Shown here in pieces: positions 2,460 through 25,333 of a stretch of DNA of 64,000 nt. The translations under genes were made by a program, and so were the position numbers. Position 1 is the first letter of the stretch. Every line of letters begins with the position of its first letter. The notes under the pieces are model-generated. The model saw only the letters and a program-made list of their open reading frames with translations. It was not told the origin of the DNA and ran no database searches. The stretch lies in the IMG/VR virus record IMGVR_UViG_3300044630_006293, positions 124,001-188,000 of that record; one strand, written 5' to 3'.

Positions 2460-4073
2460 TTAATTTGAAATAGGAATCTTTGCGAAGGAATTCCTGGCAA
2501 TTGAACGATTTGGATTAAGTACATTTTGTGCTTCTGTGTATTGATCAGTAGAAGCCCAGTCCCACTGATCAAGAGCTGTTCTATACAATTCTTGAATCAT
2601 TGGTCGAGACTTATTCCAAAGAATATTTCTCATTTTAGAAACATGAGAAAGTATATCTTGAGTATTGATTGCTCTGAGCTCAGAGGAACTAACAAAGAAT
2701 TTAACTTCTGAAATAAGACTCTTAATTTCTGCACCGGTAAAGTACTGAGTTGCATTTGCTAATGCTTCAGTATTATACACATGGGGTGTATTTATTCCAG
2801 AAAGGTAAATTGAAAAGATAGATTGACGCTCTTCAAGAGAAGGAAGGCCAACAAATAAAATTTTATCAAAACGATCTGCGCGTAACATCTCTGGCTTAAG
2901 ATGCTCAAGCTGATTAGCTGCACACATCAAGAAAACATTTTCAGGAAGTTCCTGAAGACCAGTAAGAAATTCTCCATGAACACGATCAGTCGTGCCACCA
3001 TCTACCTGGGAAGAACTTTGTCCACCAGATAGATCTCGACCAAATTCGTCAATCCAAACACATAATGGGGCCATAGCATTGATCTGTTTAAATACTGCGC
3101 GCATATTAGCTTCTGATTGACCGATATAAGAGTTCATGACTTGACTAATGCCGGTGCGAGCAAGATCTAGACCAAGAGCATTTGCAGTTGCCTCACAGAT
3201 GGCAGATTTACCAGTGCCCGGAATACCAACCATAAGCATGCGTCTGATTGGGGAAATTCCAAATTGCTTAGCTTGTTCAGGATTATGCCAAAGGTTAGCG
3301 TTTCTAGAAATAAGATCTTTAATAAAATCAAGACCACCAATATTATCAAAAGTAATTTGAGGTTTAATAATCTCTAGGATGCCGTTCTTCTTGACTGAGC
3401 TCATTTTCTGCTCATAAATATAATCAGCAGAAACTTCACCAGTTTCAAGAACAGAGGTCAAAGCAAGATTAATAAACTCAGTTTCAGAAAGGCCCAAAGC
3501 AGAAGAAGCAATAGCTTTGTAATCAGATGTAACAAGTTGATTATTAGAAGAAGAATTTATGTGAGCAAGTACTGTAACAAAATCTTCTATAGAAGGATAC
3601 TCAGTTTCTATAGAGTTAAACAAATGAGCAAAATTTTCTGGAGCAGAAAAATGAGAAACAATAATATATTGAATAGGCATAGAAGCAAGATCATTAGACC
3701 AAAATGCTTCACGATAAGTTACATTAGCGTTATTAAAAAGACCTGCGTACATTTCTACAAAGCCATCAGGATTTGAAAAAACATCAAACATAAATGTCTT
3801 TTGAGTTTCTATTTCATATTTAGAAATAAAATCATGAGCAACAGAAAAATCAAAAGTTACTTTCTTAATAACCTGAGCTGGATCATCTGGACTAGGCATG
3901 TCGACTAGAACGGGTTTCCATGATCCGTTTTTATATTGACAAAAACCGTTGATAGGATCAATGATAAAGTAACTACGATCAGAAAAATTAACGATTGATT
4001 CTAAAGCCTTAGAGGTATCCATCGTCTTAACCCACAAAGATGGGTAACCAAGTTTAATTTGAGAAAAAAGCAT
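2460..4073 (-). CDS. AAA+ ATPase (Ycf46/SpoVK/Cdc48-like; degenerate N-terminal part plus one intact AAA module)
   Basis: Walker A GIPGTGKS, Walker B VWIDE, second region of homology MLRADRFD, NIGGLD lead-in. Confidence 0.9.
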   Translation of the reverse strand: MLFSQIKLGYPSLWVKTMDTSKALESIVNFSDRSYFIIDPINGFCQYKNGSWKPVLVDMPSPDDPAQVIKKVTFDFSVAHDFISKYEIETQKTFMFDVFSNPDGFVEMYAGLFNNANVTYREAFWSNDLASMPIQYIIVSHFSAPENFAHLFNSIETEYPSIEDFVTVLAHINSSSNNQLVTSDYKAIASSALGLSETEFINLALTSVLETGEVSADYIYEQKMSSVKKNGILEIIKPQITFDNIGGLDFIKDLISRNANLWHNPEQAKQFGISPIRRMLMVGIPGTGKSAICEATANALGLDLARTGISQVMNSYIGQSEANMRAVFKQINAMAPLCVWIDEFGRDLSGGQSSSQVDGGTTDRVHGEFLTGLQELPENVFLMCAANQLEHLKPEMLRADRFDKILFVGLPSLEERQSIFSIYLSGINTPHVYNTEALANATQYFTGAEIKSLISEVKFFVSSSELRAINTQDILSHVSKMRNILWNKSRPMIQELYRTALDQWDWASTDQYTEAQNVLNPNRSIARNSFAKIPISN

Positions 4074-4181: not shown

Positions 4182-4439
4182 TTAACCCTTTTCGCCTGCA
4201 CGGCGGTGGAACTCTACGTTGTCATTTGCTCCAACAACATAGTCTTCATCAAGCTTATCTTTACCTTTGTAAGCTACAGCGTCTGAAGGAATTCCCCAAA
4301 GCTTGGAAAACTGTTCACGGATATCCTTTACAGTCTTTCCTGAAACTGGAGCAGGCTGTGTGTAAACACCAAAGCGAACGTTGGCCATCTGACCAGACGA
4401 AGGCTGTGATGCTGCACCGGAATTGTTAATTGCAGTCAT
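4182..4439 (-). CDS. prokaryotic ubiquitin-like (beta-grasp) protein, PRTRC protein C-like
   Basis: 85 aa ending EFHRRAGEKG (C-terminal Gly); directly downstream of E1, JAB and E2 genes. Confidence 0.85.
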   Translation of the reverse strand: MTAINNSGAASQPSSGQMANVRFGVYTQPAPVSGKTVKDIREQFSKLWGIPSDAVAYKGKDKLDEDYVVGANDNVEFHRRAGEKG

Positions 4440-5208: not shown

Positions 5209-6874
5209 AATAATATTCTCTTTCTGCTATATAGTCAAATTCACTTTTTGAATTTTTGTAATGAACAAATGAAGCACAAACATCAATTGGATCATTTATT
5301 GTGAATCCTTCTTGAACAAAATCTACGATAGCTTCTTTAAAAGAAGGGCAAGAAACATCATAATAATTTACACAATTAAAACAATCAGTTTCTATTTGAT
5401 AAACAAATCTTTTTTTGTGAGCTTCATCAAACTCTTTAATGTTAGATTCTGTAACAGTTTTCTTACATGAACAAAGATGAACATCAGTAAGGTTAACACC
5501 ACAGCAAAGAGTTTTTTCTTCATAAACAAAATCATCATCTGGAACAACATCGGATCCAGCTGCAAAAGGATCTAATCCTTGAGGTTTAATATTTAAAAGA
5601 AAATTAGAAACAGGATTATGTTCATCTACACAGTAGATATAATAACCAACATTGGGATCCAGTGCTCTACTGGAACAATAGTGATGAATCATAGTGATGA
5701 TGTCATACTGTCCCATATCTTGAGTAATTATAGGAGTGTCGCAAGTTGGACAAAATCCAGACTTAATTGCTTGAAGTTCTAAAGGAAAAGAACAAATCAA
5801 GCAATCAGCTGACATAACAGATTCAAGATCAATCTCAATTGCAACAATAGAATCATGAGGAATAGAATCTAATTCTTTTAGAAAAATAGATTTATCAAAT
5901 GATTTATGGGTAGTAGTTTCCGTACCAGCTGTCGTAGGTTGCGAGTTGGGAGGTTGTTGAGCCCACATCTTTTGGTACGACTGGGTTTGTGTAAGAGTAG
6001 CCTGAGTAGCCTGAGTAGCCGAACCCCCCATATTGAGGGGTTGGACTTTTTTTACTTTTTGGGTCCATTCTACAACCTCAGGATCAGGTGATTTAGATAC
6101 AAAAAGTGGCTCAAAAACATCTTCTGGCTTAAGGGTAAAAGCAGTTCCGCCCATTTGAAGCTCTATATGATATTGAGTTGCTCCATTGTTAACAGTCTTT
6201 TGCCAACCATAAGTAATATGAATGCCATCAAAGTCTGCTTGATCTTCATGATCTGTGCCAGATGCATATGCAGGCATATCAGGATGAGAGTGAACAGAAC
6301 CAACAATCATAGCTTCATCTGGTTTAATAGCAACAATGCTATCAGCATCGTACTTGCAATGAACAGAAGTGTTTTGTTGTTCAGGAACTAGCACACCCCA
6401 TCCATCAGGTCCTTCTTTAGTTGGATCATAAGTAAGTATTACGATAGATTCAGTATGATGTTGCGCGTCAACTAAGCGGAAGAATTCATCAAGCTTATCT
6501 ACAATAGTCCGAGGAATGTAAGGCATTGTATATTGTGCAACTTCTTCAACAGATGCAAAGTTTGAACCTAAAGGATCAGAAGAATCTGATACAGAACGAC
6601 CAACAAAGTTATTGACAACTTTAAGAATAGAAGGAGCATAACTTACAGAAGTAGACTGTGTTACAACTCCTTTTGAATCTTTAGTCTGAACATTTTTGTA
6701 AGTTGCTTTATCGCAAATTAAATAATAAATTTGAAATCCAAATGATTCAATTACTTCACAAATATCATCTACGACTTCCCAGTTGTTTGCAACGAAACAA
6801 GGGGCACCGTTAGACATCCAGAAATAATTCATATCATCTAGAGTGTAGTTAACTACATTCTCTACTGTAGACAT
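5201..6874 (-). CDS. JAB/MPN+ metalloprotease (deconjugase) with Cys-rich C-terminal extension
   Basis: E...GSVHSHPDMPAYASGTD JAMM motif; several CxxC motifs in the C-terminal half. Confidence 0.88.
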   Translation of the reverse strand: MSTVENVVNYTLDDMNYFWMSNGAPCFVANNWEVVDDICEVIESFGFQIYYLICDKATYKNVQTKDSKGVVTQSTSVSYAPSILKVVNNFVGRSVSDSSDPLGSNFASVEEVAQYTMPYIPRTIVDKLDEFFRLVDAQHHTESIVILTYDPTKEGPDGWGVLVPEQQNTSVHCKYDADSIVAIKPDEAMIVGSVHSHPDMPAYASGTDHEDQADFDGIHITYGWQKTVNNGATQYHIELQMGGTAFTLKPEDVFEPLFVSKSPDPEVVEWTQKVKKVQPLNMGGSATQATQATLTQTQSYQKMWAQQPPNSQPTTAGTETTTHKSFDKSIFLKELDSIPHDSIVAIEIDLESVMSADCLICSFPLELQAIKSGFCPTCDTPIITQDMGQYDIITMIHHYCSSRALDPNVGYYIYCVDEHNPVSNFLLNIKPQGLDPFAAGSDVVPDDDFVYEEKTLCCGVNLTDVHLCSCKKTVTESNIKEFDEAHKKRFVYQIETDCFNCVNYYDVSCPSFKEAIVDFVQEGFTINDPIDVCASFVHYKNSKSEFDYIAEREYYYD

Positions 6875-11253: not shown

Positions 11254-11266
11254 GATTTTCTCCTTG

Positions 11267-11340
11267 TACCGCACACGGGAATTGAACCCGTCGATGGATG
11301 TTTATAAGACATCTGTGTTCAACCAGCTCACCCGTGCGGT
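11267..11340 (-). tRNA. tRNA-Ile(UAU)
   Basis: ACCGCAC/GTGCGGT acceptor stem, GATGT-CTTATAA-ACATC anticodon arm, GGTTCAATTCC T loop; CCA not encoded. Confidence 0.85.
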
Positions 11341-11681
11341 GCGCGAACACATAGCATCTATGTTATTTTGTTTAGATATTATATAAGATATAAAAAAGAA
11401 AAACAACCTGAGATCATTTTTTGTATGAATAAAGAAAAAATAAATTGATGGTAGGTAGTGTGGCGATATGGGGCCACTGACATCACTACTTTGTCCGTCA
11501 TGAAGTCATTGAATCTTTGCTTTTTTAAAAGTTTTGAATAAATGATTACATAGTCAGCTACCATCAAACTTAATTAGTTAGCGGTGATGCCAGGAGATAT
11601 GGGTCCCACGTGCTTAAGTACATCATTCACGTATTTCATAAGTCATAAACTTAAGTTGAACACGCCACTAACTAAAATCAG

Positions 11682-12059
11682 TTAATTCTTTTTTCTTGGA
11701 CGAGGAACATCCTCGCCGGCAGCCCATCGCTCAAAAAGCTCTGGGGATAGATCGTTTACCCAAAGAGGAAAACCAAATCTATCATTTCTAACAATAAAAT
11801 CTTCTCTAGTGAGAAGTCTCCTGAGTTTTGGATTTCCATCTTTATCTAAGATGGGACGACCATTTTTATCATAACCTTGATATTTTAGATGAGGATTATC
11901 TTTGCAATAAAGAAAATGCATAGAAGTATTGTATGATACATACGCATCTATTCTATCCATAATTTCAAGGTTCTTGTAGTATTGATCTAGTATTTTATTT
12001 CTAGCAGAAAGAGATGGGATGGTTATATTGCTTTTATAAGAAGAACTTCTATTTAGCAT
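11682..12059 (-). CDS. hypothetical protein
   Basis: 125-aa ORF. Confidence 0.7.
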   Translation of the reverse strand: MLNRSSSYKSNITIPSLSARNKILDQYYKNLEIMDRIDAYVSYNTSMHFLYCKDNPHLKYQGYDKNGRPILDKDGNPKLRRLLTREDFIVRNDRFGFPLWVNDLSPELFERWAAGEDVPRPRKKN

Positions 12060-12523
12060 ATTTGAAATCCACCACAGTTTTCTAAAAACTGTTGAAATTC
12101 AACAACAAGATCATAGTCCATATGATAATGAGTTGAAAAATTAGATACTTTTAAAGTGCCATTACAAGAATTGCATTGAAGAGTCTTAGATGTTCCATCA
12201 GCTTGAAGCCAAACACGAACGCCTAATCCTTCGCAGTATTGACAATCTTCTAATGGTAAAGAATCAAGATCAGCTTTATATTTTTTTATGTATGATTGTA
12301 TGGTTCCATCTTCTAAATCTTTTTTTAAAAGTTTAGAAAGAGTTATAGAATCTTTAGCATTTAAACCAGAACCAGAATTGTCATGAGGAGATTCACATTT
12401 GCGACAAATATTGGGATGAAGTTCTTCTAGGCAATCCCATAAAGGGTGCCAGTACCAAACATTAGCGCGAAAGTATTCGCCCTGTTCGTTCTTTGGCTTT
12501 GTGCCATAAACATCCATTCCCAT
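12053..12523 (-). CDS. hypothetical protein with DnaJ-type CxxCxGxG zinc finger
   Basis: CQYCEGLG...CNSCNGT. Confidence 0.7.
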   Translation of the reverse strand: MGMDVYGTKPKNEQGEYFRANVWYWHPLWDCLEELHPNICRKCESPHDNSGSGLNAKDSITLSKLLKKDLEDGTIQSYIKKYKADLDSLPLEDCQYCEGLGVRVWLQADGTSKTLQCNSCNGTLKVSNFSTHYHMDYDLVVEFQQFLENCGGFQIC

Positions 12524-12532
12524 AGTTAACTC

Positions 12533-12796
12533 CTATACAGTATAAACGTCGCCATTTTCTTTGATTTTTATATCTTCATATGGAGCTGCAATTCGACGAT
12601 AAAGTTCAAGCTTTGCACATTCTAAAACTCCAATAACATCATTTATAGAAGAGTAAGATTTACCTTTACTATAGATGTATTGATCAATTGCGCGAGTGAC
12701 TAAATAGTTAAGCTCTCCTGGAGTTTCAATACTACGTCCTGCATAAACAAGTTTTTGGTTGATGTCAGATCTTTTTTTCTTAGATACGTATGGCAT
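12533..12796 (-). CDS. conserved phage hypothetical protein
   Basis: PGELNY...LECAKLELYRR..APYED.KI.ENGDVY pattern recalled from many phages; no function. Confidence 0.75.
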   Translation of the reverse strand: MPYVSKKKRSDINQKLVYAGRSIETPGELNYLVTRAIDQYIYSKGKSYSSINDVIGVLECAKLELYRRIAAPYEDIKIKENGDVYTV

Positions 12797-13050
12797 TATT
12801 CATCCTTGTTATTATAGAAGCTCCAAATTTGATCATCATAAACAACAGGAATAATCTCTGTTTCTAAATGAGTAATTTCAACTGGAGTTGTATCGACATT
12901 TTGATTGGTTGAGTTTATTTTATTTTGAAGACGTAAAATTAAACGACGAATTCTATCTTGTTCTTTTGGAATCCAAGATACATCAGATCTTTTATTTAAA
13001 GCTTCAACAATAATTTCAATATCATCTTGGTTAAGATTATATCTAGGCAT
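12796..13050 (-). CDS. hypothetical protein
   Basis: ORF, probable start MPRY. Confidence 0.55.
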   Translation of the reverse strand: MPRYNLNQDDIEIIVEALNKRSDVSWIPKEQDRIRRLILRLQNKINSTNQNVDTTPVEITHLETEIIPVVYDDQIWSFYNNKDE

Positions 13051-13354
13051 TGAGTTCCTCACGATAATAAAGGTCAGGATACTTGTCTCGAAGAATGTCA
13101 ATGGGATTGTACCAGTACTGGTCCTTAGGACAGGTTGGTGAAATCAAAAGCTCTACAGCGCAATGAATGCGTTGATTTTTTGGATCTTCAAAGAAATCAT
13201 CAAGTTCTTTGTAGTTTTTAAAAGGGCCAAAGAAAACACGGTCGGTTGACCGACAATGATGAACTATCCATTGATAATGAGGAAGTTCTTCTTCTTGTTT
13301 ATTTAATTCTTGTTTTTTATTTAAGTTGAATAAATTATAAATAAATTTTTTCAT
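13043..13354 (-). CDS. hypothetical protein
   Basis: ORF start trimmed to MKKF just after the tRNA. Confidence 0.6.
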   Translation of the reverse strand: MKKFIYNLFNLNKKQELNKQEEELPHYQWIVHHCRSTDRVFFGPFKNYKELDDFFEDPKNQRIHCAVELLISPTCPKDQYWYNPIDILRDKYPDLYYREELNA

Positions 13355-13356
13355 AG

Positions 13357-13430
13357 TGGGCTCTGTGGGACTTGAACCCACGACCAACGGATTATGAGTC
13401 CGGCGCTCTAACCAACTGAGCTAAGAGCCC
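13357..13430 (-). tRNA. tRNA with CAU anticodon (probably Ile2, lysidine-modified; elongator Met not excluded)
   Basis: GGGCTCTTAGCTCAGTTGGTTAGAGC...GACTCATAATCC...GGTTCAAGTCC...AGAGCCCA cloverleaf. Confidence 0.9.
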
Positions 13431-13434
13431 GTAT

Positions 13435-13599
13435 TTATTTGTAACCGTTTTTGGAGTTTCTTGCTCCGTATGTACATTTATGATTTTCGTGCCACATTTG
13501 CACATGTTCCCATTTGTGCCAGCGAAATGATTTCCGGCGACACTTTGTACACATTCCACGAAAGCTTTTATTAATACTTATATTTAATAGTGTTTCCAT
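13435..13599 (-). CDS. small Cys/His-containing protein (54 aa)
   Basis: Manually translated METLL...CTKC...HKC...GYK*; contains an in-frame CGG-A. Confidence 0.4.
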   Translation of the reverse strand: METLLNISINKSFRGMCTKCRRKSFRWHKWEHVQMWHENHKCTYGARNSKNGYK

Positions 13600-13689
13600 T
13601 TACTTAATTTTATTCTGTTTATAAAACAAATTAACTCGGAAAAATTAACATGATTGTATGTCACTGCATAACATTAATCAAATGTAATA

Positions 13690-13890
13690 TTAAAGCTTAC
13701 CAGCTCCTGGAAAGTAGCTTTTTAATTGTACAGACAAGAACATAAGTTCAGGGTATTCATACTTGTCATAGGAAGTATTTACTTCAAGTAAATCTTCAAG
13801 CTCTTTAGTGATCATCCGAACTGCAAGAGCGTCATCTTGAAATTCACCAGGAATGTTCATGGTTATTTCAGCAGTAAATTTAACTTTCAT
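13690..13890 (-). CDS. hypothetical protein
   Basis: 66-aa ORF. Confidence 0.55.
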   Translation of the reverse strand: MKVKFTAEITMNIPGEFQDDALAVRMITKELEDLLEVNTSYDKYEYPELMFLSVQLKSYFPGAGKL

Positions 13891-14043
13891 GAGTAGGTGT
13901 AGCCTCTTCTGATAATAATAAATAAAGACGAATATCCAATAATAAGTCAGTCATCTCAGATGACGAAACAAGCTGTTGACCTGAAATGTCTTTAATAGCT
14001 TGATCAACAAGTTGAACAGCATTCTTGTTTGGGTCTAATACCA

Positions 14044-14322
14044 TTATGCTTCTCCCCCGCGTTTTTTATACATAGTAACCGCTTCTTCTATATTAAGGCA
14101 ATAGTCACCAGATTCGCAAGACCATCCTTCTGGCCTAGCTATGATAGTCCATACTACGTATGGGTGATATTCAGCTTCTAAAGTGCATATAGCAATCCAA
14201 CTAGCGTAAGAATCGTTTTTAACTCTTTCTCTCATTTTAGTGAGAGCAATAACTATACGGTCGGTGTGACCAACAACATCGCCAATGCGAAGTTCTTTAT
14301 CCTCGTTAAGAGTATCAATCAT
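14044..14322 (-). CDS. hypothetical protein
   Basis: 92-aa ORF with GAGG SD. Confidence 0.65.
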   Translation of the reverse strand: MIDTLNEDKELRIGDVVGHTDRIVIALTKMRERVKNDSYASWIAICTLEAEYHPYVVWTIIARPEGWSCESGDYCLNIEEAVTMYKKRGGEA

Positions 14323-14324
14323 TT

Positions 14325-14510
14325 TTAATTACCTCGAAAAGATGTTTCATTCTTTTTAGATTTTTTTATCTTATAACCATTACGTTTAAGATCAGCAATA
14401 ATTTTTTCTGGAATATCTTGCCAAATAGGAATTCCGCAAGAAGTTAAAGTATGAGCAATGATGTCACACTTTTTTTTATGATGTAAATTAATCATGAGAA
14501 TTGCCTCCAA
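14325..14510 (-). CDS. hypothetical protein
   Basis: 61-aa ORF. Confidence 0.5.
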   Translation of the reverse strand: MEAILMINLHHKKKCDIIAHTLTSCGIPIWQDIPEKIIADLKRNGYKIKKSKKNETSFRGN

Positions 14511-14811
14511 AGTTAACTTTAATTACATTATCAGAAGAAGATTCTTCTGGCTTATCGTAAGAGTGATAGTACACCAATCTGGCGTCAGAACAATAATATG
14601 AACTAGAAGCTGGGTGATTTCTCTTTGATTCTAAAAGATTTTCTTCTAAAAAATCATCACGGTAAATATGTAATACTTTTTCGTTAGATATAATGATATC
14701 TAAACGATATCCATCTGGAGAGACAAAACAAGAAAGTGCTTCTTGAATATCTTCTTGATGATGATGTACTTGGCCATCATTAGTTCTAGTAGAAAAATTA
14801 GCTTTTGTCAT
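14488..14811 (-). CDS. hypothetical protein
   Basis: ORF start trimmed to MTKA after tRNA-Asn. Confidence 0.55.
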   Translation of the reverse strand: MTKANFSTRTNDGQVHHHQEDIQEALSCFVSPDGYRLDIIISNEKVLHIYRDDFLEENLLESKRNHPASSSYYCSDARLVYYHSYDKPEESSSDNVIKVNFGGNSHD

Positions 14812-14813
14812 AG

Positions 14814-14886
14814 CTCCCAGAGTAGGGGTCGAACCTACGACAAGCGGATTAACAGTCCGCTGCTCTGCCAACTGAGCTATCTGGGA
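14814..14886 (-). tRNA. tRNA-Asn(GUU)
   Basis: TCCCAGA/TCTGGGA acceptor, GCGGA-CTGTTAA-TCCGC anticodon arm, GGTTCGACCC T loop. Confidence 0.93.
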
Positions 14887-15000
14887 ATGCATTAAGAGTT
14901 TCTTAGCAAACTGCTGCACGAATAAGTGCACCAATATAAAGACCGACAGAGATTCCAGTAATGAATACTAATACATATAAGACATTGTGTTTTTGCATAG

Positions 15001-15084
15001 TACCCGAGACCGGACTTGAACCGGTACGCCCTTTCGAGCGAGAGAGTTTAAGTCTCTTGCGTCTGCCTATTCCGCCACTCGGGT
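15001..15084 (-). tRNA. tRNA-Leu(UAA)
   Basis: ACCCGAG/CTCGGGT acceptor, AGAGA-CTTAAAC-TCTCT anticodon arm, long variable arm. Confidence 0.92.
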
Positions 15085-20448: not shown

Positions 20449-22980
20449 TTAAAGATTACGGTTAGATGTAGTATGAACGATACCGGAATATTTAGAATGA
20501 TACTTCTGATATTCAATAATGTCAGTAAAAGTTTTTGATTCTTGATTCTCAGGAGAATAAGTCCAAGACTCAGGTTTTACTTGATTAATGGTAATAGTTC
20601 CATCAGGATTGCGATCAACAATTAATCTAGCTGCAATACCATAATGTTGAAGAGCACGCTCTAAATATGGATATACAACACGATTCATTACAATTTGATC
20701 ACTAATTTTACCACCAGAGGTAGTCATGTTTAGTGATACAGAGTAAAGGGCAAGAACAAAGTCATGCCTATCTTGTGGTTTAAGATTGCTCTCAATGGTA
20801 TCTATGATAGAAGTGTAAAGAGATTCCCAAGCATCTCTTTGAACTGCTGCATTATTTTGAATCAACTCAGGAGAATTTGCATTATAAATGCCCATTCGGA
20901 ACCTGCGTAGATGTGGTAATGCATGGAAGTACAAGCGTGAACCAAGTTGGTTAACAACTTCAGGTGGACGAGAATTTTCTTGAGACCAAGAAACTACTCT
21001 TTGACGGTAAGCTTGAAAATACTTAGAACACAAATCATAAATTTGAGTAATTTTACCATCATAAAGTTGAACTGACTCGTTTTCTTTCAATGAGTTTTGA
21101 AAGTTACGAGACTGCCAAAAGGCACGGTCGATTGGACGTCCAGATTCAATAACTTCACGAACAAGCTTTTTAGCTTCTTCGTCAATAGCAGCACGGTCAG
21201 CAGGGTCAACTGTTTGAGTGCAGCCATCAATGGCGTCTTCCAAAGAACAAAGTTGAACTTTGCGGTGATTTGGAAATACCATAGCATGAAGCATTGCTGC
21301 GTTGACATATCTGCCAACATTGCCACCATTCATAGCAGCTAATAAATCTGCCATTACTTGGTTTTGGTCATAGAATTCTGATACGTGAGCACTACTTTTG
21401 TAGTGAGTAGAAGGAAGACCTGAATAAGATACTTGTTTATTATTAATAGCCACGGAAAGGCGCATAGGCCATCCTCGTCCATTTATAACAGGAAACTTAA
21501 CAGGAGTTCCATCTGACATCATCCATGTTGGAGACCATTGATCTTCAACATATTTGAATACAGAATACTCGCCTTTGCCATTCGGAGAACGAATAGCAAT
21601 GACTACTTTTTGTCCGTCGAGTTCTCCGCCTTCAATCGTACGATAGAAGACTTTAAAGAAATCGTCGGCATCGTGGCCACCATGAGATTCATACATCTCA
21701 AGCCAATCAATATCGTCCACAACATGGACTCCAATTTCATTGATTCGCTTAATAGTTCCTGGACTTACATTTATATCATATCCTGCCATGCGAGCAATGG
21801 ATTCGGAAATGATTTGTTCGTAAACAGAACAAGGAATAGGTATGCGTTTTTGAAGTGGCATAGCGTGAGAGACAGCAAGGTTTTCGAAGAGCCACGGAGA
21901 ATCCGTAATCTTCATACCTGCAGCTACCCAACGATATGCAACATAATTCATTCGAGATTGAATTTCTTTATCTTCAATATCTTCAGAGTCTCGCCACATA
22001 CGCGTATATACAGACTTCCAGTTCTGCAATAGCTTACCATTAATTGCGTCTTGAAACATCTTTTCGTATTCTTCTTTGAGCCACATTTCCATGTCAGACT
22101 TGCGGAACAACTTGGGAAAGTTGATAACAGTCTGATCGTCGGTGATAACACGCAACTTTGGGCCTTGAGGCTCAGCCAATAAACGGTAGCCACCAGTATA
22201 GGTGACTTCCTTTTTGATATTGGCAGCAGAAGTAATAACGTCTACATCCAAAGGCAGATTGTCAGAAACAATCATATTGCCTTTTATGATACCAAGATCA
22301 CAAAGAATGCGAGCATTGTATACCTTAGATGTTGCAAGAAAGTCTTGCAAATGACGACGAATATTAGGATCGTAATAATATTCATCTGTGTCAGTAGACT
22401 TAGATGGTTCATATACAGGAAGGTTTTCAATTCCTGCAGCCATTAAACGGCTAGATACAATAAAGCATCCGTCGAGTAAACGTTCCAGTATATCTGGAGT
22501 GTTATACTCTGGAGCATCTTCATCATATATATATTTACTAAATTCAATAGGTTCAGCTATTTTAATATTAAGATTATCATAGTGTGCGTTGAAAAGAGTT
22601 GGGCGATGAAAAGATTTCATGCGCTTAGCACTTTTGCCACCGCCTTTAACAGTGAAGCCCATATGATTAAGCGTTGACATCCAGCCATTAGACTGTCCGT
22701 CAAGTAGTGTGACAACAAGTTTATTTTTGTCAACAATAGCATATTCTACGGAAGGATGACTAATGATGGTTTTAGCTTTCTGCATCTCTTCATCATTTTG
22801 AGGAATAGGCAAAGAAGCTACACGGTATTCAGAAAAAGATCCATTATCCATAGCGTCACGAAGAACTCCAATATCATAGAATCCAAACTGATAGTTATTA
22901 ACGGACCGAAGTGGTCCATTAGGTTTAGATTTAAGCCTGACGGCAGGGGAATAAGTACGGTTTGTACGGCGATTAACCAT
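20449..22980 (-). CDS. two-barrel (YonO/cellular RdRP-like) RNA polymerase-related protein, paralog 1
   Basis: R...GIIKGNM, S..NIKKE, GGHDADD, GNVGRYVN, EDAID in an order resembling RdRP/YonO motifs; shares these with 33174..35954. Confidence 0.55.
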   Translation of the reverse strand: MVNRRTNRTYSPAVRLKSKPNGPLRSVNNYQFGFYDIGVLRDAMDNGSFSEYRVASLPIPQNDEEMQKAKTIISHPSVEYAIVDKNKLVVTLLDGQSNGWMSTLNHMGFTVKGGGKSAKRMKSFHRPTLFNAHYDNLNIKIAEPIEFSKYIYDEDAPEYNTPDILERLLDGCFIVSSRLMAAGIENLPVYEPSKSTDTDEYYYDPNIRRHLQDFLATSKVYNARILCDLGIIKGNMIVSDNLPLDVDVITSAANIKKEVTYTGGYRLLAEPQGPKLRVITDDQTVINFPKLFRKSDMEMWLKEEYEKMFQDAINGKLLQNWKSVYTRMWRDSEDIEDKEIQSRMNYVAYRWVAAGMKITDSPWLFENLAVSHAMPLQKRIPIPCSVYEQIISESIARMAGYDINVSPGTIKRINEIGVHVVDDIDWLEMYESHGGHDADDFFKVFYRTIEGGELDGQKVVIAIRSPNGKGEYSVFKYVEDQWSPTWMMSDGTPVKFPVINGRGWPMRLSVAINNKQVSYSGLPSTHYKSSAHVSEFYDQNQVMADLLAAMNGGNVGRYVNAAMLHAMVFPNHRKVQLCSLEDAIDGCTQTVDPADRAAIDEEAKKLVREVIESGRPIDRAFWQSRNFQNSLKENESVQLYDGKITQIYDLCSKYFQAYRQRVVSWSQENSRPPEVVNQLGSRLYFHALPHLRRFRMGIYNANSPELIQNNAAVQRDAWESLYTSIIDTIESNLKPQDRHDFVLALYSVSLNMTTSGGKISDQIVMNRVVYPYLERALQHYGIAARLIVDRNPDGTITINQVKPESWTYSPENQESKTFTDIIEYQKYHSKYSGIVHTTSNRNL

Positions 22981-23051: not shown

Positions 23052-23489
23052 CTAAAGAGCTGAAAGCTTACGTTGTTTATTCTCATATATCTTTTTATTG
23101 AGGACACGAAGTCCCCAAATTGGAAAAGTAATAACACGAATAACTTTGTAGATAATTCTAAATAAATCTGAAAAAGCTGTAGTCCATTTATGGCGGGAGT
23201 TTTTCATTATATTTCCACCTAATTTCTTAGCCTGAGGACTATCATAATTCCAGTAAAGGAATTGATAACCAGGCACAGAGAGTACAGTTGATATTACACC
23301 TGCACCCATGGCAACAAGGCCAGCTGCACCAAATGCTATACCCATTACAAATGAAATAAACAATGAGTTTAATAAATTGAATAAGGGACTTTTGGCAGAT
23401 AGCCTACGCCATGCTGGAACTTTAGATGCAATCATCAACTCCAAAAGAGTTGAAGTGACTGCTAGGATTAACATCATTGAAAGTAGCAT
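23052..23489 (-). CDS. hypothetical membrane protein
   Basis: 145 aa with hydrophobic helices. Confidence 0.7.
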   Translation of the reverse strand: MLLSMMLILAVTSTLLELMIASKVPAWRRLSAKSPLFNLLNSLFISFVMGIAFGAAGLVAMGAGVISTVLSVPGYQFLYWNYDSPQAKKLGGNIMKNSRHKWTTAFSDLFRIIYKVIRVITFPIWGLRVLNKKIYENKQRKLSAL

Positions 23490-23577
23490 AATTCTCCTAC
23501 GTGTAGAGAGTTGATTTTTTAATTAAATATAAAATAAAAGTTTTTAAGATTTTTCTAGATGGTAATCTAGAGTAATA

Positions 23578-23811
23578 TGATTCATTTGAGTTATATGTTA
23601 TTAGTTAGTTGCTATGATTCATTTTCCTTTAATGGTACATAATTATTGAAGTTGATTCATTCTGCTTAAATGTTACATAATCATTGGGTGTGATTCATTC
23701 ACTTCATGTGTTACTTATTGAATATGGTGATTCATTTATCCGATGTGTTACTTGTCCGACTATCTGATTCATTCTACTTAAATGATACATAATCATGAGG
23801 TGTGATTTAAA
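23578..23811 (-). ncRNA. TIGR-type array (six 37-38-nt units; edge repeat AATGAATCA, loop repeat ~ATWAKTAACA, two 9-nt spacers per unit)
   Basis: tgattcatt at 23578, 23615, 23653, 23691, 23728, 23765 and degenerate at 23803; second repeat between two 9-nt variable blocks; immediately downstream of a Nop-domain gene. Confidence 0.88.
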
Positions 23812-23818
23812 GTTTAGA

Positions 23819-23840
23819 GTTGGGGGAATAAACCCCCAAC
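23819..23840. terminator. perfect hairpin between Tas gene and array
   Basis: gttggggg-aataaa-cccccaac. Confidence 0.55.
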
Positions 23841-23843
23841 TAA

Positions 23844-24701
23844 CTAAACAAATGGGTTATTAGGAATTGCAATCTCGTGTACATGATCGCCATGGGCAAT
23901 AATGTAGGGACGAGGTGCAGGAGTGCCATGATGAGCCTGATATGCTACAGCATGGTAGTGACTAAGGAAGATTTTTACAGCAAATCGTCTTGCTTGCGCG
24001 TCAATCTGAGCGTCAGAAAGTTTACCAGATTCTAAAGTCTTACGAGTTTGATTCTGTTTAAAGTTTTTCTTTTCTAAGATTGAACTAGCAAATTCAGAGT
24101 AATCTCCTGTTTGATTCTTCTCAGTACGGCGTTGTTTATCTTGCTTATAAAGCTTGCCATAGAAGCATTCTTCTTTGCCAGAGAATTTCATAAAACTCTG
24201 GCCAATTTTCCAGCACAAAGTTTTTAGTTCTGCGTTATAAGGACGCTTCTGTCCTTTCTCCCACACAACGGTGGGATCAAGCCCAGCATATCGCCAAACG
24301 CTACCTGCAGTAGGAGCTTTTGTGATATCGATATGTGATAGAAGTCCAGCAGCAAGTACGGGACCAATGCCAAATTGGCCAATGGCCCATGAACCTACAG
24401 TAGTAGATTCGGCATATGTCTGCAAAGGAGCCTTGAGAGACTTTTCCATTAATCGAAGATTGTAGGAAAGAAATTTCACAAGTTCACTTGGTGATTCTTG
24501 CTTCTCAAGCTCACGAGCCTGAGCAGCAAATGCCATACGATTTTCCTGGAGATTATAGTAGGCAGATACTACTTCACGCGCAGAGCGTGAATCAAGTTCA
24601 ACAGTTAGCGTACGAAGGTCTCGTGCAAACCGGTTGAACATAGGGAAGTCGAAGTCATTAGGATCGGTAGTTTCAGATAAATTTGATACGGGATTGTTCA
24701 T
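23844..24701 (-). CDS. tasA: TIGR-associated Nop-domain protein (TasA-like; IS110 C-terminal-domain homolog with no RuvC/HNH)
   Basis: GIGPVLAAGLL..ID...SVWRYAGLDP, YNAELKTLCW, AQARRFAVKIFL resemble the IS110/Nop domain; no DEDD motif seen; adjacent array. Confidence 0.8.
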   Translation of the reverse strand: MNNPVSNLSETTDPNDFDFPMFNRFARDLRTLTVELDSRSAREVVSAYYNLQENRMAFAAQARELEKQESPSELVKFLSYNLRLMEKSLKAPLQTYAESTTVGSWAIGQFGIGPVLAAGLLSHIDITKAPTAGSVWRYAGLDPTVVWEKGQKRPYNAELKTLCWKIGQSFMKFSGKEECFYGKLYKQDKQRRTEKNQTGDYSEFASSILEKKNFKQNQTRKTLESGKLSDAQIDAQARRFAVKIFLSHYHAVAYQAHHGTPAPRPYIIAHGDHVHEIAIPNNPFV

Positions 24702-24931
24702 GATGGTTCCTTGTATTGTATAAATAAAAAGTACTGTTATTCTTTGTATAGACTAGAATGGTTCTTCATCATTTTGTGGCAGAAAGATGATTAGATCATC
24801 ATCTGGAATTTCGCCAAACATTTTTTCAGAAATCCATTCTGGATCTAGCTGTTCATCTTGAGGGTTGGACATAGTTAGATAGCCTCTCTATGTTAAATAA
24901 TAATTAAGTTATTTCTTTGTATGAAAATAAA

Positions 24932-24963
24932 AAAGGGGAGAGTCAAAAGACTCTCCCCTTTTC
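24932..24963. terminator. bidirectional-type intrinsic terminator
   Basis: aaaaaggggagagtc-aaaa-gactctcccctttt. Confidence 0.75.
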
Positions 24964-24985
24964 TTGTATGAACTGATTACTTGTA

Positions 24986-25333
24986 TCAGTTAGTAAGCAT
25001 AATCCATACATCAAACATTTTGGTAGTGTCGTTGAACACTGAGGATGTTTGAGTACGTAGATTATCTTTAGCTGCTCGTGAGTACAGAGATGCACGAAGA
25101 GCAGCAAGATGTTTAGCTGTCATGATAGGAATTTCAATATGAAACCAAACGTTCCTGTTTTGTAGAAGCTCTCCGTAGATAGTTCCAATAACAGGATTGC
25201 GACGTCTGCCACGTCCAGCGTTGATCGGTGGTTCGCCGTTGATACGCTTAAGAAGTTTGGTAGGCTGTTGTGCAGCTGCAAACTTTCTTGGATTGCGATT
25301 CAATTGGGTTTCGGTACTTTCGATGATTGCCAT
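24986..25333 (-). CDS. hypothetical basic protein
   Basis: 115 aa; AAGGAG SD. Confidence 0.7.
   Translation of the reverse strand: MAIIESTETQLNRNPRKFAAAQQPTKLLKRINGEPPINAGRGRRRNPVIGTIYGELLQNRNVWFHIEIPIMTAKHLAALRASLYSRAAKDNLRTQTSSVFNDTTKMFDVWIMLTN

Follow-up and report, generated by a model that had tools for sequence, protein, structure and literature searches.

A Probable Dual-Repeat TIGR-TasA System in an Uncultured Tailed Jumbo Phage

Introduction

TIGR arrays were defined by Faure et al. 2025 (PMC12045711) as two alternating repeats of 8-12 nucleotides (nt) combined with 9-nt spacers, usually in 5-15 units. The arrays lie upstream or downstream of a gene for a Nop-domain protein and open on an edge repeat that is 5'-truncated. 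Each spacer is preceded by a box C (CCA) and followed by a box D (UG), and the solo-Nop form of the protein is named TasA (PMC12045711). Here a six-unit array and the adjoining tas gene are described from a 64-kb stretch (64,000 nucleotides, called the window below) of IMG/VR record IMGVR_UViG_3300044630_006293. The DNA comes from an uncultured tailed jumbo phage, and the locus is very probably a TIGR array of the dual-repeat type together with its effector, TasA. By analogy with characterized TasA proteins, the system most likely binds DNA under RNA guidance and would block transcription in this way, with no cutting of the DNA.

The dual-repeat TIGR-TasA systems, such as FpTasA from Flavonifractor plautii (PMC12045711), have the same solo, nuclease-less protein composed of a coiled-coil and a Nop domain. 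In the adjacent array of these systems, too, edge repeats alternate with loop repeats, each unit has a pair of 9-nt spacers and the first edge repeat is 5'-truncated; a phage genome as the carrier is a further shared feature. The system in the window differs in that the units are 37-38 nt rather than 36 nt long, the loop repeat shows unusual degeneracy (A-Y-W-W-R-U-A-N-C-A), box C is UCA or NCA rather than CCA, and the ninth spacer base is constrained to purines. A close relative of the window protein, MGYP006268298043, is contained in the seed alignment of the supplementary data of PMC12045711. The clade is therefore already inside the published TIGR-Tas family, and the locus is nothing new in kind.

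The best sequence and fold matches for the window protein are SpTasH from Salicola phage CGphi29 (PDB 9W03, 9W04 and 21KL) and TaTasR (9MTY, the TasR structure of Faure et al., PMC12045711). Both share the Nop domain and the coiled-coil with the window protein, and a Tyr/His pair is aligned with SpTasH. TasH and TasR differ from the window protein in carrying an N-terminal HNH or RuvC nuclease domain and in cutting DNA; the sequence identity is 17-22% over the structural alignment. Residues Y289 and H296 of SpTasH were reported to cut the precursor of the guide RNA (pre-tigRNA) in a metal-free reaction, and conservation of this dyad among dual-repeat systems was also reported (PMC13421893). 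For DNA cleavage by Tas proteins, 8-nt 3' overhangs have been published (PMC12045711).

The functional model adopted here is provided by MbTasA and PlTasA (10.64898/2026.09.09.750476 and 10.64898/2026.08.11.744272), which are nuclease-less proteins with RNA-guided DNA binding and repression. For MbTasA, guided binding and repression were demonstrated using electrophoretic mobility shift assays, a reporter assay and gene silencing in E. coli (bioRxiv 10.64898/2026.09.09.750476). MbTasA and PlTasA belong to stem-loop TasA systems, whereas the system in the window is of the dual-repeat type with the Tyr/His pair. Stem-loop tigRNAs are described for PlTasA by Faure et al. (PMC12045711) and for the stem-loop Tas proteins of Xu et al. 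2026, a study with 6,685 annotated arrays; these proteins lack the Tyr/His loop. More distant systems are the IS110/IS621 bridge-RNA recombinases and the archaeal and eukaryotic box C/D small nucleolar ribonucleoproteins with Nop5 or Nop56/58, which have the Nop-type RNA-binding fold and a two-part guide logic in common with the window system. In contrast to these, the window system has neither a DEDD/RuvC or recombinase catalytic domain nor a fibrillarin or L7Ae partner, its guides stand in a tandem array, and its predicted target is DNA rather than ribosomal RNA.

Results and Discussion

The TIGR Array

All features of the tas gene and the array are read on the minus strand of the window. 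The principal elements are as follows.

23844..24701, minus strand: tasA, 285 amino acids (aa), coiled-coil and Nop domain without nuclease domain (profile, PDB and model evidence)
23803..23810, minus strand: 5'-truncated edge repeat TTAAATCA, which opens the array (sequence read)
23578..23802, minus strand: six TIGR units (repeat finding and sequence read)
23802-23774, 23764-23737, 23727-23700, 23690-23662, 23652-23624 and 23614-23587, minus strand: bodies of units 1-6
23773-23765, 23736-23728, 23699-23691, 23661-23653, 23623-23615 and 23586-23578, minus strand: edge repeats 1-6

The array opens 34 nt past the tas stop codon. Each unit is composed of spacer A (9 nt), a loop repeat of 10-11 nt ending in NCA, spacer B (9 nt) and the edge repeat AATGAATCA, in this order. 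The six edge repeats are identical and are spaced by 37-38 nt, and periods of 37 and 38 were returned for the array by Tandem Repeats Finder. The sequence AATGAATCA appears nine times in the window, where 1.9 copies are expected, and a count of nine was reached in 0 of 100 shuffles; six of the nine copies fall in the array, regularly spaced. A scan for k-mer periodicity found no second array of the TIGR type in the window. The Rfam search of the window returned four tRNAs only and no family for the array.

An array of six dual-spacer units had been proposed in an earlier, sequence-only reading of this DNA. When the sequence was read again, all spacer pairs and loop repeats were found exactly as listed there, and the match to TIGR architecture that it proposed agrees with the dual-repeat layout defined in PMC12045711. 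A CRISPR-Cas locus would have one repeat of ~25-36 nt in alternation with a spacer of comparable length, as well as cas genes. Here each unit instead combines a pair of dissimilar short repeats with a pair of 9-nt spacers, and the neighbouring open reading frames (ORFs) have no cas-like match.

The loops and spacers were compared using 40 units pooled from the window and four related contigs (L003, L024, L026 and L028, listed below). The pooled loop consensus is A-Y-W-W-R-T-A-N-C-A, with the final CA present in 40 of 40 units and the TA nearly invariant. With respect to box C, the edge repeat ends in UCA and the loop ends in NCA in all six units of the window. Box D is represented by AAUG in the edge repeat, and the corresponding loop position is G in 27 and A in 10 of the 40 pooled units. 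At the ninth position of both spacers, 39 of the 40 units have a purine. The part of each spacer that varies freely may therefore measure 8 nt; alternatively, the true start of the repeats may lie one base before the boundary parsed here.

Some units of the window resemble one another. The spacers of unit 4 are nearly the same as those of unit 1 (7/9 and 8/9 identical), and the loop ATTATGTAnCA is common to units 1, 4 and 5. Spacer B of unit 3, when reverse-complemented, agrees with spacer A of unit 1 at 8/9 positions; a rough estimate of the chance probability of this match is ~0.01-0.03. The similar units and the 8/9 match suggest unit duplication and, possibly, the tiled recognition of one 27-bp site. 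The reverse strand of this putative 27-bp site (units 3 and 1/4) resembles a ribosome-binding site with a start codon.

The TasA Protein

The 285-aa protein was compared with the PDB by sequence, by profile and by predicted structure. The sequence search (phmmer) gave two matches only, SpTasH (E 3.5e-11) and TaTasR 9MTY (E 7.5e-11). When a family profile built from 52 members was used, the E values were 8.6e-32 for TasR and 6.1e-19 for TasH. An AlphaFold2 model obtained from the 52-member alignment has a mean pLDDT of 89.1 and a pTM of 0.84. The model contains helices only and zero beta-strands: a long coiled-coil hairpin (approximately residues 21-98) is followed by a helical domain. The sequence-only reading had proposed structure prediction as a check for the Nop domain, and this check supports it: the top 11 PDB matches of the model in Foldseek are all TasH or TasR chains, each with a probability of 1.0 and with E values from 1e-7 to 4e-4. 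The target TM-score for TasH/TasR reaches 0.74, and the IS621 bridge-RNA recombinase appears next.

No nuclease domain was found by Pfam in the 285-aa protein. The model has no beta-strands and therefore no RuvC or HNH fold, and on this structural basis the protein is TasA, the nuclease-less Tas. The proposal of a Nop-only TasA type is thereby borne out by homology to TasH/TasR in both sequence and predicted fold and by the missing nuclease domain. A Pfam match to HNH_3 (E 0.21) was rejected; the matched segment is the conserved His-rich C-terminal processing loop of Tas proteins, which aligns with TasR and TasH. The only other Pfam signal is a sub-threshold match to Transposase_20 (E 7.6e-4) at residues 111-145, the helix-hairpin region of the Nop domain, and the PHROGs match is phrog_4285, annotated as 'transposase' (E 1.6e-38). 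The earlier label 'IS110/Nop-like' was thus a fair one.

Residues Y266 and H273, in the C-terminal loop of the Nop domain, align with Y289 and H296 of SpTasH, respectively. Tyr is conserved in 45 and His in 49 of the 52 aligned sequences, and Y266/H273 is the predicted dyad for the processing of pre-tigRNA. The tas ORF is intact and is 100% identical in three contigs. The family comprises 2,621 clusters at 50% identity (E <= 1e-3), with thousands of matches in the 90% database. A tblastn search with TasA returned distant matches only, from Salicola phage CGphi29 and Microcystis phage Mvi-JY20.

Arrays and Spacers in Related Phages

The tas gene and the array were compared with those of the following related contigs, for which the identity of Tas to the window protein is given.

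L002 (210,831-bp IMG/VR contig): Tas 100%, array identical
L001: Tas 100%, four units
L003 and L004: Tas 73%, 14 units, edge repeat as in the window, placed ~2 kb downstream and beyond five small genes
L026: Tas 81%, 12 units, edge repeat as in the window
L028: Tas 83%, ~9 units, edge repeat as in the window
L024 (Lake Erken contig): Tas 95% over the 55 C-terminal residues that the contig covers, 3 units, edge repeat as in the window
L005: Tas 47%, ~20 units with a different edge repeat, GAGTGAACCA
L006: Tas 47%, two-unit remnant

Relatives with Tas proteins of 47-83% identity carry arrays of 2 to ~20 units. An absence of arrays beside orthologs had been named by the sequence-only reading as grounds for rejecting it; arrays accompany relatives from 47 to 95% identity, and those from 73 to 95% have the same edge repeat. 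Contigs L027 and L029 stop before any array could show. L005 and L006 have near-identical Tas proteins with very different arrays (at 5750-6400 and 4240-4310, respectively), and the L006 remnant lies closer to tas.

The array of L001 (3938-4050) differs from that of the window by two exact 37-nt indels, each of one unit, and L001 lacks units 3 and 6. The leader is identical. Three point changes are found inside the array, one in the loop of unit 4 and two in spacer A of unit 5, the ninth base of which is still a purine. To judge from this pair of sequences, arrays change by whole-unit indels. Zero spacer pairs are common to the window and the arrays of the relatives with 73-95% identical Tas. 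This complete replacement of spacers between phages with Tas proteins of 73-95% identity is easier to reconcile with external targets that change quickly, for example competing mobile elements or host strains, than with a conserved role in self-regulation.

In the relatives, small regulator-like genes either separate tas from the array or follow tas immediately. These include a WhiB-family gene in L026 (7583-7819, Pfam match), a WhiB-like ORF in L003 (5570-5815, by motif) and an RNA polymerase alpha-CTD-like gene in L028 (6855-7184).

Flanking Elements and Neighbouring Genes

The following elements were located around tasA and the array.

24929..24964, minus strand: terminator-like hairpin with T-run, closing the upstream gene (24986..25333); 16-pair stem with 7 GC pairs
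24897..24925, minus strand: weak match to a sigma-70-like promoter, a candidate for tas and the array, TTCATA-17-TATTAT, 9/12 matches
24753..24872, minus strand: acidic 39-aa ORF between the upstream terminator and tas (read from sequence)
23812..23849, minus strand: strong hairpin with the core GTTGGGGG / CCCCCAAC, overlapping the tas stop codon, no U-run (kept in the centroid structure)
23554..23571, minus strand: 7-bp hairpin right after the last edge repeat, no U-run (centroid structure)

The hairpin at 24929..24964 marks the upstream limit of the tas transcription unit. Sigma-70-like sites near tas are no commoner than in shuffled sequences, and 24897..24925 is a candidate only. The acidic 39-aa ORF is not conserved upstream of tas in L003, where a membrane-protein gene is found instead, and it is therefore probably outside the TIGR-Tas system. 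A conserved partner gene was sought beside tas; the 39-aa ORF is not kept in L003, and the flanking genes examined have no ParB match.

The centroid fold of the region retains only the hairpins at 23812-23849 and 23554-23571. The first of these, which separates tas from the downstream sequence, may act as an attenuator, serve as a signal for processing or confer stability. Hairpins after tas with a different stem sequence and without a U-run are also present in L003 (~3857-3880) and L024 (~170-195). The second hairpin, at 23554..23571, may be the end of the array transcript.

The stretch that holds the tas/array locus is syntenic yet variable; it is bounded by a transglycosylase gene on one side and by a gene for a conserved protein of 843 aa on the other. 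The 843-aa ORF (20449-22980, minus strand) has no Pfam or PHROG match, and its counterparts of 844-848 aa in L026 and L028 lie just downstream of the tas/array region. A gene for a 145-aa membrane protein is found 3' of the array in the window (23052-23489, minus strand) and upstream of tas in L003 (2498-2959). The tas/array module sits in a locally rearranging region.

Proposed Mechanism

The steps from transcription through processing and binding to repression are proposed by analogy with characterized Tas systems, starting from the anatomy and homology described above. The tas gene and the array would be transcribed on the minus strand from a start downstream of the terminator at 24929-24964. 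To reach the array, transcription would have to pass through the hairpin at 23812-23849; otherwise, the array would need a promoter of its own. Based on homology to TasR and TasH, a TasA dimer would use its coiled-coil and Nop domains to bind the box C-like NCA before each spacer and the box D-like UG/RG after it. As predicted from the alignment with Y289/H296 of SpTasH, the precursor would then be cut by TasA inside the edge repeats via Y266/H273 to give tigRNAs of 37-38 nt.

Each tigRNA would steer the dimer to an 18-bp site with spacer A and then reverse-complemented spacer B on one strand; the two spacers would pair with opposite DNA strands. This is the geometry that had been put forward from the sequence, and it is derived here from the published 8-nt 3' overhangs, which fix the strand layout. 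The expected outcome is stable binding that blocks transcription or replication, as has been shown with another TasA; cleavage is not expected because the nuclease domain is absent. The sequence-only reading had likewise suggested programmable DNA binding and repression, which has since been demonstrated for a different TasA (10.64898/2026.09.09.750476) and may extend to the window protein by analogy.

Search for Targets

A search of phage and viral contigs for adjacent matches to spacer A and the reverse complement of spacer B (18 bp), as suggested along with the original reading, produced no credible target. For IMG/VR, the 18-mer composed of spacer A and the reverse complement of spacer B was scanned as an exact match. 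Within the window, the six 18-mers were compared in four arrangements with <=4 mismatches allowed, and the best sites outside the array have 3-4 mismatches. When 42 units from six arrays were compared with ~125 kb of related jumbo-phage DNA, none matched with <=2 mismatches outside the arrays. The exact scans of IMG/VR gave zero matches for units 2 and 3. Exact self-targets are excluded for all six units, since the phage's own 210-kb contig is part of IMG/VR.

Degenerate patterns were used for two sets of units in IMG/VR. The pattern for units 1/4 found a hybrid sequence only, in two contigs of 57% GC. The pattern for unit 5 found only a hybrid that is 1 mismatch away from both known variants; most of these matches lie inside an ORF adjoining a DNA methyltransferase gene in contigs of ~28% GC, one of which is named as a giant-virus metagenome-assembled genome (MAG). 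The tiled 27-bp site was not found in IMG/VR, and the A3+A1 hybrid control gave 1 unrelated match. Two unrelated matches for unit 2 in the metagenome scan, in a helicase-like gene and a methyltransferase-like gene, are attributed to chance.

Unit 6 has an 18/18 match in three related phage contigs of ~30% GC (L021 6000-6017, L022 7683-7700 and L023 346-363). The match lies 64-81 nt from the start of an ORF of 582 aa, which adjoins a virion structural gene, and the wrong-geometry control for this unit gave 0 matches. The contigs L021, L022 and L023 are matched by no other spacer of the clade. One independent match among six units is the chance expectation, and the unit 6 match was therefore rejected as evidence for a target and kept as a weak lead. 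The same problem of false positives with short spacers was met by Xu et al.

Alternative Explanations

Several observations weigh against a functional TIGR-TasA locus. The hairpin between tas and the array could halt transcription. The array ends with a full edge repeat followed by the 7-bp hairpin, and the terminator scan called no terminator there. The array is short, and three of its six units (1, 4 and 5) resemble duplicates that have since diverged. Five loop variants are found among the six units, and the box D G is absent from the loop of unit 6. Finally, no credible target was obtained from the window, ~125 kb of related phage DNA, IMG/VR or one metagenome scan.

There is a small chance that the locus is decaying or inactive, with an intact tasA and a short, partly duplicated array whose degenerate loops yield no useful guides. 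The 6 units of the window compare with 9-14 in relatives, and the shared loop of units 1, 4 and 5 is accompanied by similar spacers. Furthermore, the sister phage L001 has lost two units, and L006 retains a two-unit remnant where L005 has ~20 units. These losses are to be set against the six identical edge repeats, the CA of box C that is intact in every loop, the retained Tyr/His pair, and the intact tas ORF with its 100% identity in three contigs. Judged by the pooled loops, the degeneracy belongs to the clade as a whole and is no sign of decay at this locus, because it is equally present in the long arrays of the relatives.

A slim chance is given to guided DNA binding for a role other than repression, in which TasA would bend or mark the phage's own genome for recombination, integration, partition, packaging or replication control. 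Such roles were raised by Faure et al., who noted a DNA bend of ~180 degrees and ParB-associated TasA loci (PMC12045711). In the exact scans of IMG/VR there is no self-target in the own 210-kb contig, and the nearest genes examined on both sides of the locus have no ParB or integrase match. The spacers also differ between close relatives, which is unexpected for sites in conserved phage DNA.

An IS110-family element or remnant, with repeats that are bridge-RNA-like, transposon ends or the iterons of a DNA-binding protein, is hardly credible: the sub-threshold Transposase_20 match (confined to the Nop region), the PHROG label 'transposase' and the more distant structural match to IS621 are outweighed by best matches that are Tas proteins, by a syntenic rather than varying position of the gene in related phages, and by a regular four-part unit with two variable 9-mers that fits neither bridge RNA nor iterons. 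Members of the IS110 family combine an N-terminal DEDD RuvC-like catalytic domain with a catalytic Ser domain at the C terminus, and they use a bridge RNA. In the absence of beta-strands from the model there is no alpha/beta RuvC-like domain and hence no N-terminal DEDD/RuvC domain, and by this predicted structure the IS110 reading is effectively refuted by the missing catalytic domain. The dual-repeat TIGR-TasA system is retained as the best explanation of the locus.

Phage Context and Host

The genes of the window encode portal and tail proteins, a Lon-like protease, a ResIII/Helicase_C (SNF2-like) helicase, a subtilase, a transglycosylase and four tRNAs. The tRNA genes form a cluster at 11266-15084 on the minus strand (Ile-TAT, Met-CAT, Asn-GTT and Leu-TAA), and such clusters are typical of large phages. 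The GC content is 36.7%. A megablast search with 10 kb of the window against cultured phages gave no match, and by this search and the tblastn search with TasA the phage is without a close relative in culture. The source is a large, uncultured tailed phage from freshwater.

An actinobacterial host is hinted at by the hairpins, which have no U-runs, and by the WhiB-family genes that separate tas from the array in relatives. A scan of genome contigs gave one 1.6-kb contig, which is binned with a Lake Erken Bacteroidetes MAG and is too weak a link for a host assignment.

Implications

TIGR-Tas systems are compact RNA-guided DNA binders that require no protospacer adjacent motif, and they are of current interest for genome engineering. 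The gain and loss of units in TIGR arrays and the natural targets of these systems are stated as open questions in the literature. The locus described here provides a natural series for both questions: identical TasA proteins are found with arrays that differ by whole units, and TasA proteins of 73-95% identity are found with the same edge repeat and different spacers. The correct recognition of the array also indicates that TIGR arrays can be identified by reading raw sequence without tools. It is unlikely that the array holds a readable record of the origin of TIGR units and of their targets. If it does, a natural target of a TIGR system could for the first time be obtained from this clade, along with a model in which spacers originate by duplication and drift.

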